Shown here in pieces: positions 419-6,563 of a stretch of 64,000 nt of DNA (the stretch's first letter is position 1; the number at the start of each line of letters is the position of its first letter). The stretch is taken from the sequence record KY555145.1; one strand, 5' to 3'. A model generated the notes under the pieces. The model was not told the origin of the DNA. It was given only the letters and a program-made list of their open reading frames with translations, and ran no database searches. The position numbers and the translations under genes were made by a program.

Positions 419-2542
419 TCAGACGTCCAGAGCGAAGGCCGGCGGGGAGACGTCCGGCTTCTGAATGATGAACCCCCGATCCAAGAGGGGCGGGAAGACC
501 TGCTTGAGCACGCCGGCCGCGACCCCGGCTTCCTCGGCGATTTCGGCGAACGTGAAGGCCTCGCGCTGACCGGCGCTGGCGACAAACAGATCGTTGAGCG
601 CCAGGATCACCGCGCCCGCCGGACTGATCTCGTAGGCCATGTCGAAATTCGGGTCTTCCGACAGCCGCAGCAGGCCCTCGGCCTCCAGGTTCGCGATGAG
701 CGCCTTGAGTTGGTCGACCTTGACCGCGCCAAGATGGGTTTGGATTTCCCAGGGCGCCGCCGGCTCCTCGGCGCGCACGGCTTGCAGCGTCGCGATCAAG
801 GCGATCGCCGGCATGGCCCGCACGATCATCTCGTCGCCAACCGTCAGGTCCGGGGCGTTGACCAGCAGGTCATTGATCACCGCGTCGCCGTGGGTCTCGA
901 CATAGGTCCGCAGCCGCTTGAGGGCGACCAGGAAGTCGTCCTTGGTGATCGGCTCGATGCGGAAGGTCAGGAGCGGGTCGGTCGGAATCTCCGAGAAGTA
1001 GGCCCGACCCCGGTGGCTCCAGCCCTCGACCACATGCAGGAAGAGATCGATCGGCATGGCGACGGCGCCAAAGCCCAGTCGCGCATCGTCCGTCGCCTCC
1101 TCGACCTGCGCCAGGGCGTTATCGATCGCTTCGAGCGTGAAGCCCCCGACAAGGCCGTTTTCCGCCGCGTCCAGCACGTTGGCCGCTTCTTCGGTGCCGA
1201 GCCCCTCGACGACCATTTCCGAGGCCTCCTGAGCCGTTTCCTGCGGCAGGGCGTCGGCGAGCTTGCTCATCGCCTCGGCGACGCCGCTCGTGTCGAGTTC
1301 CAGCTTCAGGGCCAGCTTCTCGGGACGCGCCGAGTAGGGCACGCCCTGGATCACCACGGCGCCCAGGTCGCCGACGACGCGCTTGGTCACTTCCAGATAG
1401 GCGTAGCGCGAGGCGGCGTTGAGCAGCGACAGCCGTTCGAAGACGATCTGCTGCTCCTGCTCGCGCGACATGATGCCCGTCTCCAGGATAAACAGCGGCT
1501 CGGAGCCGTCCAGCGGCGGCTTGGCCTCGCCGTCGTCTTCCGGATGATCCTCGTCGAACTCGGCGCCGCTGATCGGCTCGCTCTCCGGCGGGATGAAGCG
1601 GATGCCCGGCTCGCGGGGCGGTTCGGCGGGAGTGGCGTCGTCAAGAGGCATGTCGGTCCTTTGAGGCTTGGAGGTGATGAAGAGCGTGGTGAGATCGACG
1701 TCCCAGACCCCAGACCCATCGGTGAAGAGCGCCATGAAGGTCCCCAGGCGCGCGTCCCAGCGGATGGTCTGGATCACGCCGTTGACGTCGCCATAGACGC
1801 CGGTCGCCCCCACGAGTTCATCGCGCAGGACCTCCGCATGGTCGTGGCACTCACCAAGCGTCGCCGGACGCACGGCGTGGAACGGGTATTGCTGATAGGC
1901 GCCCGGCGGCGAGACGAGGCGGACATTGACGTAGAGCGGCCCCAGATGGGTGTGGGCGTCGCGCAGGAAGCCGACCACGGTCTCCCCGTCGTTCTGGGTC
2001 GCCACCACAGGCATGCCGGCGCAGTTAGCGGTCAGGACCGCCGGATAGTCCTGGGGATAGGCCACGGCGTAAAGGTGGAGATGATCACCCCGGCGCTGGG
2101 CCTTCCAGTCGGCGACACACCAAGCCGCCACGCGCGTGGCCCCGAACTCCGGCGTCTCCTCGATCAAGACGCCGCCGTCCGGAAGGTCCGCTTGCCCAAT
2201 ATAAGGAACGACCTCGCTATGGCTGACGCTCCAGGCGGGCTTGGGAAATTGCGGGGTGATCATGAGCTTCTCGGTGAAGGTGAGATTGATGGCGTCGGCG
2301 TAGTGGACATACGGGCCGACCGGGGTAGTCCAGGGCGGATCGCCCTTGCGAATGTCCGACAGCGGCACCGCGACGTGCCTGCCGTTGGGCTGGACGATGT
2401 CGGCCAGGATGCGCGGCGGCTGGTGCATCAGGGTCACGACGTGCCCCTCGCCCGCCTCGAAGGTGCGACTCTTGGGCCACCAGACCTTGGACCCGGCCCA
2501 GTGGATCGACTGGATGACGAGGTCTTGTTCGGTCCCGATCAT
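419..2542 (-). CDS. 707-aa hypothetical protein with probable C-terminal tandem winged-helix domains
   Basis: Long ORF with phage-like codon use; C-terminal LIANLEAEGLLRL and FAEIAEEAGV...LLDRGFII resemble wHTH. Confidence 0.8.
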   Translation of the reverse strand: MIGTEQDLVIQSIHWAGSKVWWPKSRTFEAGEGHVVTLMHQPPRILADIVQPNGRHVAVPLSDIRKGDPPWTTPVGPYVHYADAINLTFTEKLMITPQFPKPAWSVSHSEVVPYIGQADLPDGGVLIEETPEFGATRVAAWCVADWKAQRRGDHLHLYAVAYPQDYPAVLTANCAGMPVVATQNDGETVVGFLRDAHTHLGPLYVNVRLVSPPGAYQQYPFHAVRPATLGECHDHAEVLRDELVGATGVYGDVNGVIQTIRWDARLGTFMALFTDGSGVWDVDLTTLFITSKPQRTDMPLDDATPAEPPREPGIRFIPPESEPISGAEFDEDHPEDDGEAKPPLDGSEPLFILETGIMSREQEQQIVFERLSLLNAASRYAYLEVTKRVVGDLGAVVIQGVPYSARPEKLALKLELDTSGVAEAMSKLADALPQETAQEASEMVVEGLGTEEAANVLDAAENGLVGGFTLEAIDNALAQVEEATDDARLGFGAVAMPIDLFLHVVEGWSHRGRAYFSEIPTDPLLTFRIEPITKDDFLVALKRLRTYVETHGDAVINDLLVNAPDLTVGDEMIVRAMPAIALIATLQAVRAEEPAAPWEIQTHLGAVKVDQLKALIANLEAEGLLRLSEDPNFDMAYEISPAGAVILALNDLFVASAGQREAFTFAEIAEEAGVAAGVLKQVFPPLLDRGFIIQKPDVSPPAFALDV

Positions 2543-2964
2543 GCGGACGCCGCCGCGCCGGCCGGCGTCAAGCCGTAGATGGTGGGGCCTCGCGGCGACT
2601 TGCCGAGCGCGACCACTTCCAGATAGCCCATATTATTCAAAGCCTTTGCCGTTTCATGATCGGGATGGTCGGTGAAGACGTTGAGCCGTCCGCCCTCGCC
2701 CATTGCCTGGGCGGCGCGCAGAAGGCTCGCCTCGGCTTCGGTCAAGGTGACCAGGGCGACATCCTCCAGCGCCACGTCGATCACGCAGGTCTGGCCCTGA
2801 TGAACGAACTCGATGATCGCCAGCCGGCGATAGGTCCCCGGCAGGACCGCAAGGCAGACGCCTCGGACCTCGACCTTCTGGCGGGCGGTGATCGGGAGAT
2901 AGAGGCTCGTCTTGACGGCCTTGCCCTTGAGGGACAGATGCTCGTGCGTCGCCAGCGGGATCAT
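2539..2964 (-). CDS. hypothetical protein with C-terminal winged-helix-like segment
   Basis: 4-nt overlaps with neighbours; TAKALNNMGYLEVV...YGLTPAG pattern. Confidence 0.75.
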   Translation of the reverse strand: MIPLATHEHLSLKGKAVKTSLYLPITARQKVEVRGVCLAVLPGTYRRLAIIEFVHQGQTCVIDVALEDVALVTLTEAEASLLRAAQAMGEGGRLNVFTDHPDHETAKALNNMGYLEVVALGKSPRGPTIYGLTPAGAAASA

Positions 2965-3206
2965 GGCTCGACCTTCCGGACAGTGTAGGAGAATTCGTCG
3001 TGGACGCGACCGTCGAAACTAGCCTCGTAGCCGGGGCCGAGTTCGGCCAGGATGCGCGCCTCGATCTCGGCGAAGTCGATTTTCGCCATCGCCTGTTCGG
3101 CCGCCCGCATCTGCTGGAGGAAGCCGTCCTTGATCTGGCGCCCCGCCTCGGTGCGGATCGGGATGTTCTGGATCGGCGGCTCGGATTTCGACAGACGCTC
3201 GCCCAT
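2961..3206 (-). CDS. 81-aa protein resembling the DNA polymerase I (family A) motif-A segment
   Basis: RLSKSEPPIQNIPIRTEAGRQIKDGF...IDFAEIEARILAEL versus Pol I [26 protein letters not shown]...ADYSQIELRIMAHL (recalled alignment). Confidence 0.7.
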   Translation of the reverse strand: MGERLSKSEPPIQNIPIRTEAGRQIKDGFLQQMRAAEQAMAKIDFAEIEARILAELGPGYEASFDGRVHDEFSYTVRKVEP

Positions 3207-3754
3207 CAGGCCCTCCGGCGATAGACCCGCACCGGGCGGGTGGGGAGGCGTTTCTCAGGCGGCTTGTAGGCGACCAGGGCATGGCTGATGCAGTAGACGC
3301 CTGCCTCGGCGCGGCATCCGCAATGGCCAAAGTCCGGCGAGTTCGGGTCGCCATAGGGCCAGCGGCACATTCCGCGCTTGAGTTCGGCCGTCGCGAACAG
3401 CCGCGCCGGGCGCGGCGGGATGACCGCCGTCCCTTCAGGGACCAGGGCGAGCTTAGGCTTGGCCGGCGGAGCGGGCTTTTCGACCTTCTTGGGCTTACGC
3501 GCCGTGGCCTTCTTGACCTTGCGGACCTGGATGCCCAGGCCGCGCGTCTTCTTGCGGCGGGCGGTCGGAGGCGGAACCTTCTCGCCCAGTTCGCCGGCGG
3601 CCTTCAGTCGGTCGGCCTTACCGCAGACGGCGCTCTTGGTGCGCGGCACGCTCAGGCGCTGACCGATCTCCTTGGTCCCGACCGGCTCCGCCCAGAGCTT
3701 CTTGAGCAGGGCGATATCCTCGTCCGGCCAGTCGGAATTCCGCTTCTTCACCAC
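3206..3754 (-). CDS. gcrA: GcrA-family cell-cycle regulator
   Basis: N-terminal WPDEDIALLKKLW...RTKSAVCGKADRL and C-terminal MCRWPYGDP...HCG...YCISHALVAY match GcrA hallmarks; AAGGAG RBS. Confidence 0.92.
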   Translation of the reverse strand: MVKKRNSDWPDEDIALLKKLWAEPVGTKEIGQRLSVPRTKSAVCGKADRLKAAGELGEKVPPPTARRKKTRGLGIQVRKVKKATARKPKKVEKPAPPAKPKLALVPEGTAVIPPRPARLFATAELKRGMCRWPYGDPNSPDFGHCGCRAEAGVYCISHALVAYKPPEKRLPTRPVRVYRRRA

Positions 3755-3761
3755 GCTTGCA

Positions 3762-3941
3762 CTACTCCTTGATCTCGACGCTCTTGGGCGGATTGGGATG
3801 AGGAACGAAGACCAGGGCCACGTCCTGACCGCCGGTATAGCGCGTGCGCCGACTGTAGAGCCAGCCGCCTTCCACCGCCAACCGCTCGGTCACCTGACCA
3901 TCGGCTTCGTCGATCTTTTCCCACTTGGACTTCTTAGCCAT
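3762..3941 (-). CDS. 59-aa hypothetical protein (MAKKSKWEKIDEADGQVTERLAVEGGWLYS...ALVFVP...)
   Basis: Hand-translated, below the ORF-track cutoff; GAGGGG RBS, ATG 3941, TAG 3762; similar to 12341..12637. Confidence 0.75.
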   Translation of the reverse strand: MAKKSKWEKIDEADGQVTERLAVEGGWLYSRRTRYTGGQDVALVFVPHPNPPKSVEIKE

Positions 3942-3962
3942 CTTCCCCTCGAATTTGGCGGC

Positions 3963-3991
3963 ACCCTAGAGGAGCGTTCGAGTGTTGACAA
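3963..3991 (-). promoter_or_regulatory. leftward sigma70-type promoter of the gcrA operon
   Basis: Minus strand TTGTCA-17-TAGGGT. Confidence 0.6.
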
Positions 3992-4017
3992 GCACCAATG
4001 TCGCTGGCTTTCGAGTG

Positions 4018-4062
4018 TTGACAAGTCCGGTGCTCGTCTATAGGGAGATCGGGACGACAACG
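4018..4062 (+). promoter_or_regulatory. sigma70-type promoter with GACGACAACG leader
   Basis: TTGACA-17-TAGGGA-6-GACGACAACG followed by AAAGGAG. Confidence 0.8.
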
Positions 4063-4075
4063 AAAGGAGCCCGCC

Positions 4076-4384
4076 ATGCGCTATGTGCTCGACTATGCCG
4101 ACGACCGGGACAAGCCGGTCTACACCGACTTCCAGGCCGGCGACCGCAAGGCGGCCATCGCCAAGGCCAAGCGCCTGCTCGCCAAGGCGATCAAGACCGT
4201 CGATTTCTCGCTCCATGGGGCCTACATCTTCGTCGATCCGACGGGCGTCGCCCGCGACGTCGACGACATGATCCCGTTCGGCATGCTGAGCACGATGGCC
4301 TACGCCAGCATCATCACCCCGTCGATGATCTCGTTCGACGACCGCGACGCCAAGGCGGCGATCGCCGCGAGGCTCGCCCAATGA
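4076..4384 (+). CDS. hypothetical protein
   Basis: ATG after AAAGGAG; 102 aa. Confidence 0.8.
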   Translation: MRYVLDYADDRDKPVYTDFQAGDRKAAIAKAKRLLAKAIKTVDFSLHGAYIFVDPTGVARDVDDMIPFGMLSTMAYASIITPSMISFDDRDAKAAIAARLAQ

Positions 4385-4593
4385 TGGATCGTCAGGACGT
4401 CAAGCCCGGCTTCATCTATCGCGGCGGCAAGAACGGTGCCCTTCGGCAGGTCGTGAGCTACGGCGCCACGCCTGACTACGTCTGCTGGGCCAATCCGCAT
4501 GATCGCTTGCCCTATGGCGGCTTCATGTCCACCACCTGCACCTCCAAGGCGTCCTTCGCCCGCTGGGCCGACAAGATCGAGGAAGAGGTCTGA
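4381..4593 (+). CDS. hypothetical protein (MMDRQDVK...), copy A
   Basis: ATGA overlap with upstream stop; duplicated at 5299. Confidence 0.8.
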   Translation: MMDRQDVKPGFIYRGGKNGALRQVVSYGATPDYVCWANPHDRLPYGGFMSTTCTSKASFARWADKIEEEV

Positions 4594-4865
4594 TGAACAC
4601 CTTTTTCCTCCGGCAGACCAAACGGGACGAGCAGGGCCGGCGCTACTTCGAGTTCGTCGATCCTGACCTGACCCAGCGCCTCTATGTCCGCAAGCCGCCG
4701 GACGACTGGTCCGAGGGCTTCCCGATCGTCCTGGAGGACTTCGTCGACGGCAAGCCCGCCGGCTCCATCATCTGCCCGGCCGGGAAGAAGCGGGGGCACG
4801 GCTTCGCGGCCTTCTTCAAGGCCAACCCCAAGGATTTCCGCAAGCTCAAGAAAGGTCGCCTATGA
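4593..4865 (+). CDS. hypothetical protein (MNTFFLRQ...), copy A
   Basis: TGATG overlap; identical protein at 5789. Confidence 0.8.
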   Translation: MNTFFLRQTKRDEQGRRYFEFVDPDLTQRLYVRKPPDDWSEGFPIVLEDFVDGKPAGSIICPAGKKRGHGFAAFFKANPKDFRKLKKGRL

Positions 4866-5128
4866 GGATTCCCCAGCCCGTCGAGTTCACCGTGGCCGAC
4901 CTCATCGCCCACCTTGCGACCCTGCCCCAGGACGCCAAGGTCGGCGTGCGCGGCGGGTTCGGGGGGTTCGGGGGCTTCCGGCCGCTCGACGAGATCGCCC
5001 CGATCGAACTCGTCACCTTCTACGGCGAGACCGACGTCGACCGCATGACGCTGGCGACCGCCGACCCCATCGCCATCAACTGGAAGGGCAAGCGCGGCGA
5101 GCCCTTCACGGCCATCATTCTCGACTAG
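4862..5128 (+). CDS. hypothetical protein (MRIPQPV...), copy A
   Basis: ATGA overlap; copy at 6058. Confidence 0.8.
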   Translation: MRIPQPVEFTVADLIAHLATLPQDAKVGVRGGFGGFGGFRPLDEIAPIELVTFYGETDVDRMTLATADPIAINWKGKRGEPFTAIILD

Positions 5129-5136
5129 GAGGACCC

Positions 5137-5298
5137 ATGACCAACCGTGTCTGGATTGAACTCGAACCGTCGCGACGTCGACGACATGATCCCGTTCGGC
5201 ATGCTGAGCACGATGGCCTACGCCAGCATCGTCACCCCGTCGATGATCTCGTTCGACGACCGCGACGCCAAGGCCGCGATCGCCGCGAGGCTCGCCCA
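5137..5298 (+). pseudogene. duplication junction: 12-codon 5' fragment of the 6324 gene joined to the 3' fragment of the 4076 gene
   Basis: MTNRVWIELEPS at 5137 is identical to the start of 6324; sequence from 5171 matches 4253 onward. Confidence 0.8.
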
Positions 5299-5511
5299 AT
5301 GATGGATCGTCAGGACATCCAGCCCGGCTTCATCTATCGCGGCGGCAAGAACGGAACCCTGCGTCAGATCGTGAGCTATGGGGCGACCGAGGATTTCGTC
5401 TGCTGGGCCAATCCCCACGACCGCCTGCCCTACGGCGGCTTCATCTCCACCATCTGCACGTCCAGGACGTCGTTCGCCCGCTGGGCCGACAAGATCGAGG
5501 AAGAGGTCTGA
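5299..5511 (+). CDS. hypothetical protein (MMDRQDIQ...), copy B
   Basis: 10 of 70 residues differ from 4381..4593. Confidence 0.8.
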   Translation: MMDRQDIQPGFIYRGGKNGTLRQIVSYGATEDFVCWANPHDRLPYGGFISTICTSRTSFARWADKIEEEV

Positions 5512-5792
5512 TGCTGTACAGCATGATCACGGGCGACTCTCCCGAAGACGAATTCGCCGACTATGAGTTCGCCAACGGGACCCAGGTCCACAATTCTCAA
5601 GCCGAGGACGATGGAACCTTCCGTCGCATGATCACCACGCCCAAGGGGATCAACGTCACCTTCTGGAACGTGATGCCCGTCGAGATCGTGGGCGAGGTCG
5701 CGGCCGAACTCGATCGGGTCGCGGCGGTCAACTTCGAGCAGGGCAAGCGTGCGAAGGCAGGTGAAATCATTCGCGTGTTGGGGCTCGGATGA
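5511..5792 (+). CDS. hypothetical protein present only in copy B
   Basis: TGATG and ATGA overlaps on both sides. Confidence 0.8.
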   Translation: MLYSMITGDSPEDEFADYEFANGTQVHNSQAEDDGTFRRMITTPKGINVTFWNVMPVEIVGEVAAELDRVAAVNFEQGKRAKAGEIIRVLGLG

Positions 5793-6061
5793 ACACCTTC
5801 TTCCTTCGGCAGACCAAACGGGACGAGCAGGGTCGACGCTACTTTGAGTTCGTCGATCCTGACCTGACCCAGCGCCTCTATGTCCGCAAGCCGCCGGACG
5901 ACTGGTCCGAGGGCTTCCCGATCGTCCTGGAGGACTTCGTCGATGGCAAGCCCGCCGGCTCCATCATCTGCCCGGCCGGGAAGAAGCGGGGGCATGGCTT
6001 CGCGGCCTTCTTCAAGGCCAACCCTAAGGATTTCCGCAAGCTCAAGAAAGGTCGCCTATGA
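5789..6061 (+). CDS. hypothetical protein (MNTFFLRQ...), copy B
   Basis: Duplicate of 4593..4865. Confidence 0.8.
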   Translation: MNTFFLRQTKRDEQGRRYFEFVDPDLTQRLYVRKPPDDWSEGFPIVLEDFVDGKPAGSIICPAGKKRGHGFAAFFKANPKDFRKLKKGRL

Positions 6062-6315
6062 GGATTCCCCAGCCCGTCGAGTTCACCGTGGCCGACCTCA
6101 TCGCCCACCTTGCGACCCTGCCCCAGGACGCCAAGGTCGGCGTGCGCGGCGGGTTCGGGGGCTTCCGGCCGCTCGACGAGATCGCCCCGATCGAACTCGT
6201 CACCTTCTACGGCGAGACCGACGTCGACCGCATGACGCTGGCGACCGCCGACCCCATCGCCATCAACTGGAAGGGCAAGCGCGGCGAGCCCTTCACGGCC
6301 ATCATTCTCGACTAG
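6058..6315 (+). CDS. hypothetical protein (MRIPQPV...), copy B
   Basis: Duplicate of 4862..5128 with one fewer GGF unit. Confidence 0.8.
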   Translation: MRIPQPVEFTVADLIAHLATLPQDAKVGVRGGFGGFRPLDEIAPIELVTFYGETDVDRMTLATADPIAINWKGKRGEPFTAIILD

Positions 6316-6323
6316 GAGGACCC

Positions 6324-6563
6324 ATGACCAACCGTGTCTGGATTGAACTCGAACCGTCCGCGTCCGAGGGCCACGCCCGCGCCGCCGCCGCGTCGGCCAT
6401 GCTGAAGCGCCTGGGTGTCGACGTCGGCGTCCACAAGCCGGTGTTCTGGCACGAGCGCAATGAGCGCTACTGCTTCACGCTCGACGCCTCGGGCGTCTAC
6501 GTCGAGGCCGAGGACCACGGCCACTGGTACAACCTCGATTTCCTGGCGGGCGCCGATGTCTGA
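6324..6563 (+). CDS. hypothetical protein (MTNRVWIELEPS...)
   Basis: AGGAGG RBS, ATG 6324. Confidence 0.8.
   Translation: MTNRVWIELEPSASEGHARAAAASAMLKRLGVDVGVHKPVFWHERNERYCFTLDASGVYVEAEDHGHWYNLDFLAGADV

Follow-up and report, generated by a model that had tools for sequence, protein, structure and literature searches.

A short Caulobacter phage gene beside gcrA resembles the floor of the DNA polymerase I palm and is under purifying selection

The stretch of DNA analyzed here, referred to as the window, comprises the last 64 kb of the genome of Caulobacter phage Ccr29 (KY555145, 229,319 bp). On its minus strand, at positions 2961..3206, lies an open reading frame (ORF) with an ATG start that encodes 81 amino acids followed by a stop codon. 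It is a homologue of phiCbK gp221 and belongs to PHROG 12116, and we refer to it and its product as mini-PolA. The gene immediately upstream (3206..3754, minus strand) encodes a phage GcrA-like cell-cycle regulator (Pfam GcrA, E = 5.4e-25), and its stop codon overlaps the start of mini-PolA by one base (TGATG). The stop of mini-PolA in turn overlaps by four bases (ATGA) the start of a 141-amino-acid homologue of gp220 (2539..2964, minus strand). An earlier note on this DNA had described an 81-residue ORF adjoining gcrA with clean start and stop overlaps to both neighbours, and the locus is as it described. A Shine-Dalgarno sequence, GGAGGG (3211..3216, minus strand), is found approximately 5 nt upstream of the mini-PolA ATG, within the 3' end of gcrA. 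Positions 2000-5000 of the window are 100% identical among Caulobacter phages Ccr10, Ccr2 and Ccr29.

The surrounding genes form a string that is transcribed leftward. The string starts with a homologue of gp223 (59 amino acids; 3762..3941, minus strand), assigned by PHROG 14288 and by synteny, and in the phiCbK annotation it extends, tightly packed, as far as gp209. Starts and stops overlap as a rule throughout it, not only at mini-PolA. According to the same annotation, a divergent intergenic region (3942..4075) separates the string from rightward genes. The gp220 homologue is fast evolving; its sole match is PHROG 11942, and it has no match in Pfam, NCBIfam or PADLOC. Beyond it lies a homologue of gp219 (419..2542, minus strand; PHROG 12845), a 707-amino-acid ORF that exceeds the phiCbK annotation (672 amino acids) by 35 codons. 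Searches of Pfam, PHROG and NCBIfam revealed no polymerase homology in the gp219 or gp220 homologue. A scan of positions 2400-4300 identified no sigma-70 consensus site and no terminator, and because no terminator intervenes, gcrA, mini-PolA and gp220 are probably co-transcribed. A fusion of GcrA to mini-PolA through a -1 frameshift was also considered. The frames are compatible, but the junction has no slippery heptamer and the candidate was rejected.

Further along the same leftward string, on the same strand, five genes downstream of mini-PolA and outside the window, lies tgrL (gp216). RNA-seq has identified tgrL (CbK_gp216) as a highly expressed early gene (PMC10688885). As gp221 shares the gene string with tgrL, it is likely to be expressed early as well.

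Mini-PolA is related to the family A DNA polymerases. Residues 4-56 match positions 120-170 of the 381 positions of the Pfam DNA_pol_A model (PF00476) with an E-value of 8.3e-12, scoring 45 bits against a curated cut-off of 34, and the profile match to PolA on which the earlier note had staked its proposal is thus present. The NCBIfam models for Pol I also match, at 46 and 44 bits versus cut-offs of 720 and 600. Among solved structures, those of Pol I match with a best E-value of 8.7e-11, and positions 345-395 of the Klenow chain (R668-S718) pair with residues 4-57 of mini-PolA. By this pairing R4 is equivalent to R668, Q13 and N14 to Q677 and N678, R18 to R682, D44 to D705, E49 to E710, and R51 to R712. 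In the Klenow fragment, R668, Q677, N678 and R682 are contact residues for the primer strand, with D705 and E710 forming part of the metal and nucleotide site. A search of 1.84 billion representative proteins returned 358 matches. Besides mini-PolA itself, all of these have E-values of 8e-8 or weaker and share 35–55% identity; all non-self matches are therefore distant, and no recent donor is indicated.

The protein consists of four segments. Residues 4-22 (3141..3197, minus strand) form Pol I motif 2 (RLS..P.QNIP.RT..G), equivalent to Klenow R668-G686 in the PDB and Pfam alignments; residues 4-18 align with RLSS..PNLQNIP, and Q13, N14, I15 and P16 are invariant. Next comes a variable linker rich in alanine, glutamine and glutamate (residues 23-41; 3084..3140, minus strand), which in the alignment replaces the Pol I helix and beta-9 strand and which carries a five-residue deletion in phage BL57. 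Residues 42-57 (3036..3083, minus strand) contain the motif A aspartate D44, E49, R51 and helix L, as seen in the Pfam, PDB and lineage alignments. Here the sequence reads IDFAEIEAR, where Pol I has D-Y-S-Q-I-E-L-R. The remainder, residues 58-81 (2964..3035, minus strand), is a tail that is not colinear with Pol I by position-specific scoring matrix (PSSM), Smith-Waterman and hidden Markov model (HMM) tests against shuffled sequences. By these alignments, residues 4-57 are the floor of the Pol I palm, comprising motif 2, the motif A aspartate and helix L. The likeness to the motif A region of Pol I that the earlier note described, including the catalytic aspartate, consequently stands for residues 4-57, with D44 equivalent to D705, and does not extend colinearly into the last 25 residues.

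Outside this segment little or nothing of Pol I is left. Motif B, in the O-helix of the fingers, is not found in mini-PolA, as the Pfam match reaches no further than position 170 of 381 and only 37 residues follow D44. The thumb, the fingers and the exonuclease are likewise absent and there is no unambiguous motif C, so mini-PolA cannot polymerise. The view that the ORF is far too short to be a polymerase is borne out.

Mini-PolA is also not a copy of the polymerase of the phage itself. phiCbK encodes a separate, complete T7-like polymerase, gp123, in its replication module (PMC3556154). This 748-amino-acid protein covers Pfam positions 28-381 in one stretch, lies about 60 kb from mini-PolA, and has no detectable similarity to it by BLASTP (E ~1). 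Since gp123 is complete and dissimilar, we rejected a duplication of the replicative enzyme as the origin of mini-PolA, which instead belongs to the bacterial Pol I sequence type. Outside the window, gp123 (L048, 2701-4947) weakly matches the PADLOC model RTasPolA of the DRT class (E = 7.4e-5). Mini-PolA has no PADLOC match, this model included.

The tail deserves separate consideration. Its residues D65, G66, R67, H69, D70, E71 and F72 are invariant in the lineage alignment. BLASTP carried some Pol I alignments colinearly to residue 79, across the 'G.DIH' region. However, an HMM of the region following helix L, built from 49 full-length polymerases, gave the tail scores of only -3.5 to -1.9 bits (p 0.2–0.5 against shuffles), and a colinear continuation past helix L was rejected. 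The similarity to Pol I is thus colinear for residues 4-57 only, and the last ~25 residues do not continue it.

The tail does resemble two other strands of the palm, although the scores are small. The better of the two is the strand just upstream of motif 2, to which the 'DGR[IV]H' of the tail can be fitted. A simple PSSM gives 10–19 bits (p <= 1.5e-4) and an HMM of this strand gives 2.1–7.6 bits, values reached by 0, 46 and 1 of 3000 shuffles. It is also the best Smith-Waterman site for the tail in 78 of 147 comparisons. The second-best is motif C, to which '[IV]HDE' (VHDE, residues 68-71) corresponds. The motif C HMM scores range from -1.2 to 3.7 bits and were reached by 17, 120 and 2 of 3000 shuffles (p 0.006, 0.04 and 0.0007), and in 36 of the 147 comparisons Smith-Waterman places the tail best at motif C. 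A match to the upstream strand would imply that the segment is circularly permuted; the strand at the C-terminus could then pair with the RLS strand at the N-terminus, an arrangement also present in Pol I. A match to motif C would instead imply an internal deletion of the fingers with the carboxylate cluster kept.

Searching phage genomes with tblastn, we identified mini-PolA in 26 Caulobacter phage records belonging to four lineages, at one place per genome. Its length is 81 amino acids in the phiCbK group, 83 in Rogue/BL64, 83 in BL10 and 78 in BL57, and the protein is identical in phiCbK, Ccr2, Ccr10, Karma and Magneto. The gene order gp223, gcrA, mini-PolA, gp220, gp219 is constant in all four lineages. 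The block as a whole has the identical distribution: each of the 26 records contains it, and the other phage records searched do not. An (A/G)GAGGG Shine-Dalgarno sequence 5–6 nt before the ATG is kept in Rogue, BL64, BL10 and BL57. Similarly, the overlap of the ATG with the gcrA stop and that of the mini-PolA stop with the gp220 start (ATGA; GTGA in BL57) are kept in the four lineages. Mini-PolA has a ribosome-binding site of its own and is coupled in translation to gcrA on one side and gp220 on the other.

Comparisons between lineages indicate that the protein itself is under selection. At a synonymous divergence (dS) of 0.5–0.6, the ratio of nonsynonymous to synonymous divergence (dN/dS) is 0.29–0.32 (bootstrap 95% 0.13–0.63), values of 1 or above occur in at most 0.1% of bootstrap resamples, and the Fisher p is 0.001. 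The lowest ratios are found in motif 2 (0.05–0.12), in which 19 consecutive residues are invariant in the four lineages even though the proportion of synonymous differences (pS) is 0.31–0.49. Motif A and helix L follow with 0.09–0.31, the tail has 0.23–0.48, and the linker has 0.2–0.8. Purifying selection on mini-PolA is therefore strongest at the residues that are conserved in Pol I. The neighbouring genes have higher ratios, 0.41–0.65 for GcrA and 0.57–1.07 for gp220. No other protein of the block is as well conserved as mini-PolA, which keeps 71–78% identity between lineages versus 32–35% for gp219. Between BL57 and the Rogue group, dN/dS for gp220 is close to 1.

The boundaries, Shine-Dalgarno sequence and overlaps kept in four lineages, together with a dN/dS of 0.29–0.32, support the proposal in the earlier note that this is an expressed gene and not debris, and equally its suggestion of a domesticated fragment. 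That note would have given up the idea if there were no significant match to a PolA profile, or if homologues were randomly truncated and evolving neutrally. Given the profile match, the low dN/dS and the fixed boundaries, neither is the case.

Stand-alone forms of this segment are not confined to Caulobacter phages. Among the representative matches and IMG/VR contigs we identified about 20 diverged stand-alone ORFs of 52–166 amino acids (for example P0016, P0034, P0058, P0080, P0083, P0102, P0116, P0149, P0152, P0200 and P0094; loci L029, L031, L035, L042, L043/L044 and L046). Each begins with a methionine and a few residues, continues from motif 2 to helix L, and ends soon after. P10, Q13, N14, I15, P16 and E49 are invariant across these mini forms, and R18, T19, G22 and D44 nearly so. 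Most of the other mini-ORFs have no tail of the Caulobacter type. They sit among strings of small uncharacterized genes within phage-like contigs of up to 205 kb, and their neighbours include genes for a helicase, ParB-like, DprA, HD, GmrSD_N, AcrVA2-like and DpdA proteins, and endonuclease V. In a maximum-likelihood tree of 47 alignment columns, 17 of 20 mini forms fall in one clade apart from 78 full-length polymerases, with a Shimodaira-Hasegawa-like support of 0.85, and the Caulobacter phage forms cluster with P0034 and P0016 (support 0.90). Patterns designed around the Caulobacter phage form gave no match in a scan of metagenome contigs. A search of 5.8 billion proteins returned 2801 short matches, mostly truncated or frameshifted canonical polA genes, which we did not count as mini forms; about a dozen true mini forms are found among the matches listed.

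Several other ORFs carry parts of the segment in different settings. P0034 (L006, 812-1246; Logan SRR22868773) encodes 144 amino acids and is the sole relative outside of Caulobacter phages to share part of the tail (…SYAV) together with IDFA…RILAELG. Motif 2 alone, fused to other sequence, occurs in three ORFs, found at L039, L040 and L047. The 273-amino-acid ORF at L039 (3326-4147; IMGVR_UViG_3300009314_000004, with the same in L041) contains scrambled pieces of a family A polymerase, in which the motif 2 peptide is preceded by a stretch (DIH..TAAELFG..QR..AK) from the region that follows motif A and surrounds motif B. At L040 (3956-4549), L009 (8001-8501; P0152) and L047 (2746-3378), unrelated sequence is joined to the motif 2 peptide or to the unit running from motif 2 to motif A, and the partners in this set are an approximately 150-amino-acid domain with no Pfam match, a cysteine-rich tail, and a 210-amino-acid protein.

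The gene itself has been catalogued in databases. Since 2012 phiCbK gp221 (AFU87053) has been labelled 'putative Pol I DNA polymerase, palm domain', and the UniRef label is 'DNA-directed DNA polymerase family A palm domain-containing protein'. PHROG 12116 has 81 positions and the label 'DNA polymerase', and residues 1-81 of mini-PolA align to profile positions 1-81 (E = 2.8e-56). The 2012 genome paper does not mention gp221 (PMC3556154), and we found no later study of it in the literature. What makes it worth pursuing in a tractable model system is the evidence of selection, together with a tail that departs from colinearity and the presence of comparable units in large phages unrelated to these. 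ORFs of this kind should not carry the annotation 'DNA polymerase'.

Given these observations, mini-PolA is very probably a real phage gene that is maintained by selection and has no catalytic role; it encodes a microprotein that descends from a family A DNA polymerase of the bacterial type. In the explanation that we consider best, which taken as a whole falls somewhat short of an even chance, this protein would be made early, in the leftward string with tgrL (gp216), and would act through binding and not through catalysis. The retained residues of motif 2 and motif A may occupy something that Pol I-type enzymes of the host engage, the candidates being primer 3' ends, nicks in DNA, or a factor that recognizes this face of Pol I, and mini-PolA would thereby be a competitor during host takeover. 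We favour competition for a Pol I ligand because the most constrained residues are those that contact the primer strand and the metal and nucleotide site in the Klenow fragment, but this particular mechanism remains tentative and is on balance doubtful. More speculative still is the possibility that the Caulobacter gene belongs to an undescribed and widespread family of phage microproteins. Members of such a family would consist of the primer-terminus and metal-binding floor of Pol I, from motif 2 to motif A, removed from the rest of the enzyme. Large phages would deploy them as portable units that inhibit or hijack Pol I-type functions of the host, or an immune pathway dependent on such functions, and in Caulobacter phages a rearranged palm strand would complete the unit.

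Several observations weigh against this interpretation. AlphaFold models built from 3 aligned sequences (the Rogue and BL64 proteins being left out) or from 19 are mediocre, with a predicted local distance difference test (pLDDT) score of 74 and predicted template modelling (pTM) scores of 0.41 or 0.33. They contain a flexible N-terminal motif 2, helices at residues 20-41 and 45-56, and a hairpin at 60-78. The stretch corresponding to the Pol I beta-9 strand is rich in alanine, glutamine and glutamate and is modelled as helical. Foldseek searches with the models gave no PDB match; in BFVD they matched only the mini-PolA protein itself, and when the AlphaFold model is superposed on the one in BFVD, which is of a protein with 99% identity, the template modelling (TM) score is only 0.39. 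Because the models disagree and have low confidence, the tertiary arrangement is unreliable, and they do not support structural mimicry of the palm; as predicted, the monomer is not similar to the Pol I palm. A palm slice of 50 residues may not fold or bind DNA alone. In addition, no neighbour family is shared among 15 mini-ORF loci, the clade of mini forms could be due to long-branch attraction on 47 columns, and expression of mini-PolA is deduced from gene context.

Other roles for a selected fragment of Pol I have to be considered. It may be, along the lines proposed in the earlier note, an anti-defence decoy or inhibitor that imitates the most conserved surface of family A polymerases and so titrates or blocks a host immune protein that detects or makes use of polymerases of this kind. 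Mini-ORFs do occur where large phages cluster their small accessory genes, one such locus also contains AcrVA2-like, GmrSD_N and DUF1643 genes, and the neighbouring gp219 and gp220 evolve fast, as is often the case for genes in an arms race. A PolA-like defence model, RTasPolA, exists in PADLOC; however, mini-PolA lacks any match there, and we know of no Caulobacter defence system that senses Pol I. Mini-PolA evolves slowly, unlike many anti-defence proteins, and a sensor triggered by binding would be switched on, not silenced, by a decoy. A decoy is unlikely. The conserved overlaps suggest a different role, as an accessory subunit complexed with phage GcrA, gp220 or both that modulates the rewiring of the host cell cycle, since one-base and four-base overlaps of the type kept here in four lineages often mark stoichiometric partners. 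The restriction of the gp219-gp223 block to exactly the same 26 phage records fits this proposal, as does the lack of GcrA in CcrColossus reported by Gill et al. (PMC3556154). However, overlapping starts and stops are common to the whole gene string, the co-absence concerns the entire block and not the pair, and a GcrA or gp220 homologue lies nearby in 0 of ~20 other mini-ORF loci, which makes a dedicated subunit distinctly unlikely.

Should the VHDE of the tail be motif C placed next to motif A, mini-PolA might be a minimal metal- or nucleotide-binding palm, with D44, D70 and E71 binding Mg2+ and dNTP or supporting residual phosphoryl transfer. H69, D70 and E71 are invariant in all lineages, the motif C HMM scores the tail above most shuffles, Smith-Waterman alignment favours motif C in about a quarter of the comparisons, and the order of A followed by C is colinear so that a single internal deletion would suffice. 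The AlphaFold models place the tail in a beta hairpin (60-68/71-78) with H69-D70 at its tip, as in motif C. These scores are nonetheless tiny, the strand upstream of motif 2 fits better on both measures, the tail is missing from most other mini-ORFs, and no motif B is present to hold a triphosphate; we regard this possibility as improbable. At the other extreme, the ORF may be a decaying polA remnant that stays open only since ribosomes must cross it to reach gp220. It is a piece of a larger gene with a weak fold prediction and an at best putative function, the L039 contig contains scrambled, debris-like polymerase pieces, and most short database matches are frameshifted or truncated canonical polA genes. 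A mere spacer, however, would not keep 19 residues invariant at a pS of 0.3–0.5. The dN/dS of 0.05–0.12 falls on exactly those residues conserved in Pol I, the boundaries are identical though neighbouring genes have diverged to 32–35% identity, and like units recur in unrelated phages, all of which renders decay decidedly improbable. Introns, inteins or homing endonuclease genes sometimes interrupt the polymerase genes of phages, and mini-PolA might in principle be a fragment of a split enzyme that joins in trans with further parts encoded by the phage. With neighbours that have no polymerase homology, a single tblastn place per genome and a complete gp123, this is hardly credible.

Comparison with known systems places the microprotein reading in context. 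Family A polymerases such as E. coli Klenow, Bst, Taq and M. smegmatis Pol I share with residues 4-57 the region from motif 2 through helix L at 35–55% identity, but are 600–900 residues long versus 81 for mini-PolA. The gp123 polymerase also belongs to family A and is encoded in the same genome, but it is complete, whereas mini-PolA is of the bacterial Pol I type. phiCbK gp221 and PHROG 12116 represent the same gene family as the Ccr29 protein over their full length, with labels that come from databases only. By analogy with microProteins and dominant-negative fragments, which are likewise small separate homologues of part of a large protein, competition would be plausible. However, classical microProteins retain the dimerisation domain of an oligomeric target, while Pol I is a monomer and the piece retained in mini-PolA is a segment of the active site. 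Split or interrupted phage polymerase genes also yield short ORFs with a polymerase motif, but the mini-PolA locus lacks complementary pieces and has neither an intron nor an intein or homing endonuclease gene.

If functional, mini-PolA would be a natural example of part of an enzyme active site cut out and maintained as a small protein in its own right. Polymerase 'fragments' of this sort in phage annotations are mostly dismissed as debris or mislabelled as polymerases. This one sits in the probable early host-takeover block of a classic and tractable Caulobacter model phage and has look-alikes in unrelated large phages. Its target would reveal a host process that is manipulated through Pol I-like contacts, and the protein could be the basis of a compact, genetically encoded tool for probing or inhibiting what family A polymerases do.

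A further feature of the window lies beyond the divergent intergenic region. Positions 4250-6360 contain an imperfect tandem duplication with a spacing of 918–1196 nt and 91–97% identity. It yields two identical 90-amino-acid ORFs (4593-4865 and 5789-6061) and two near-identical ORFs of 88 and 85 amino acids (4862-5128 and 6058-6315). Ccr29 is the sole record with two matching places for positions 2000-5000 of the window.

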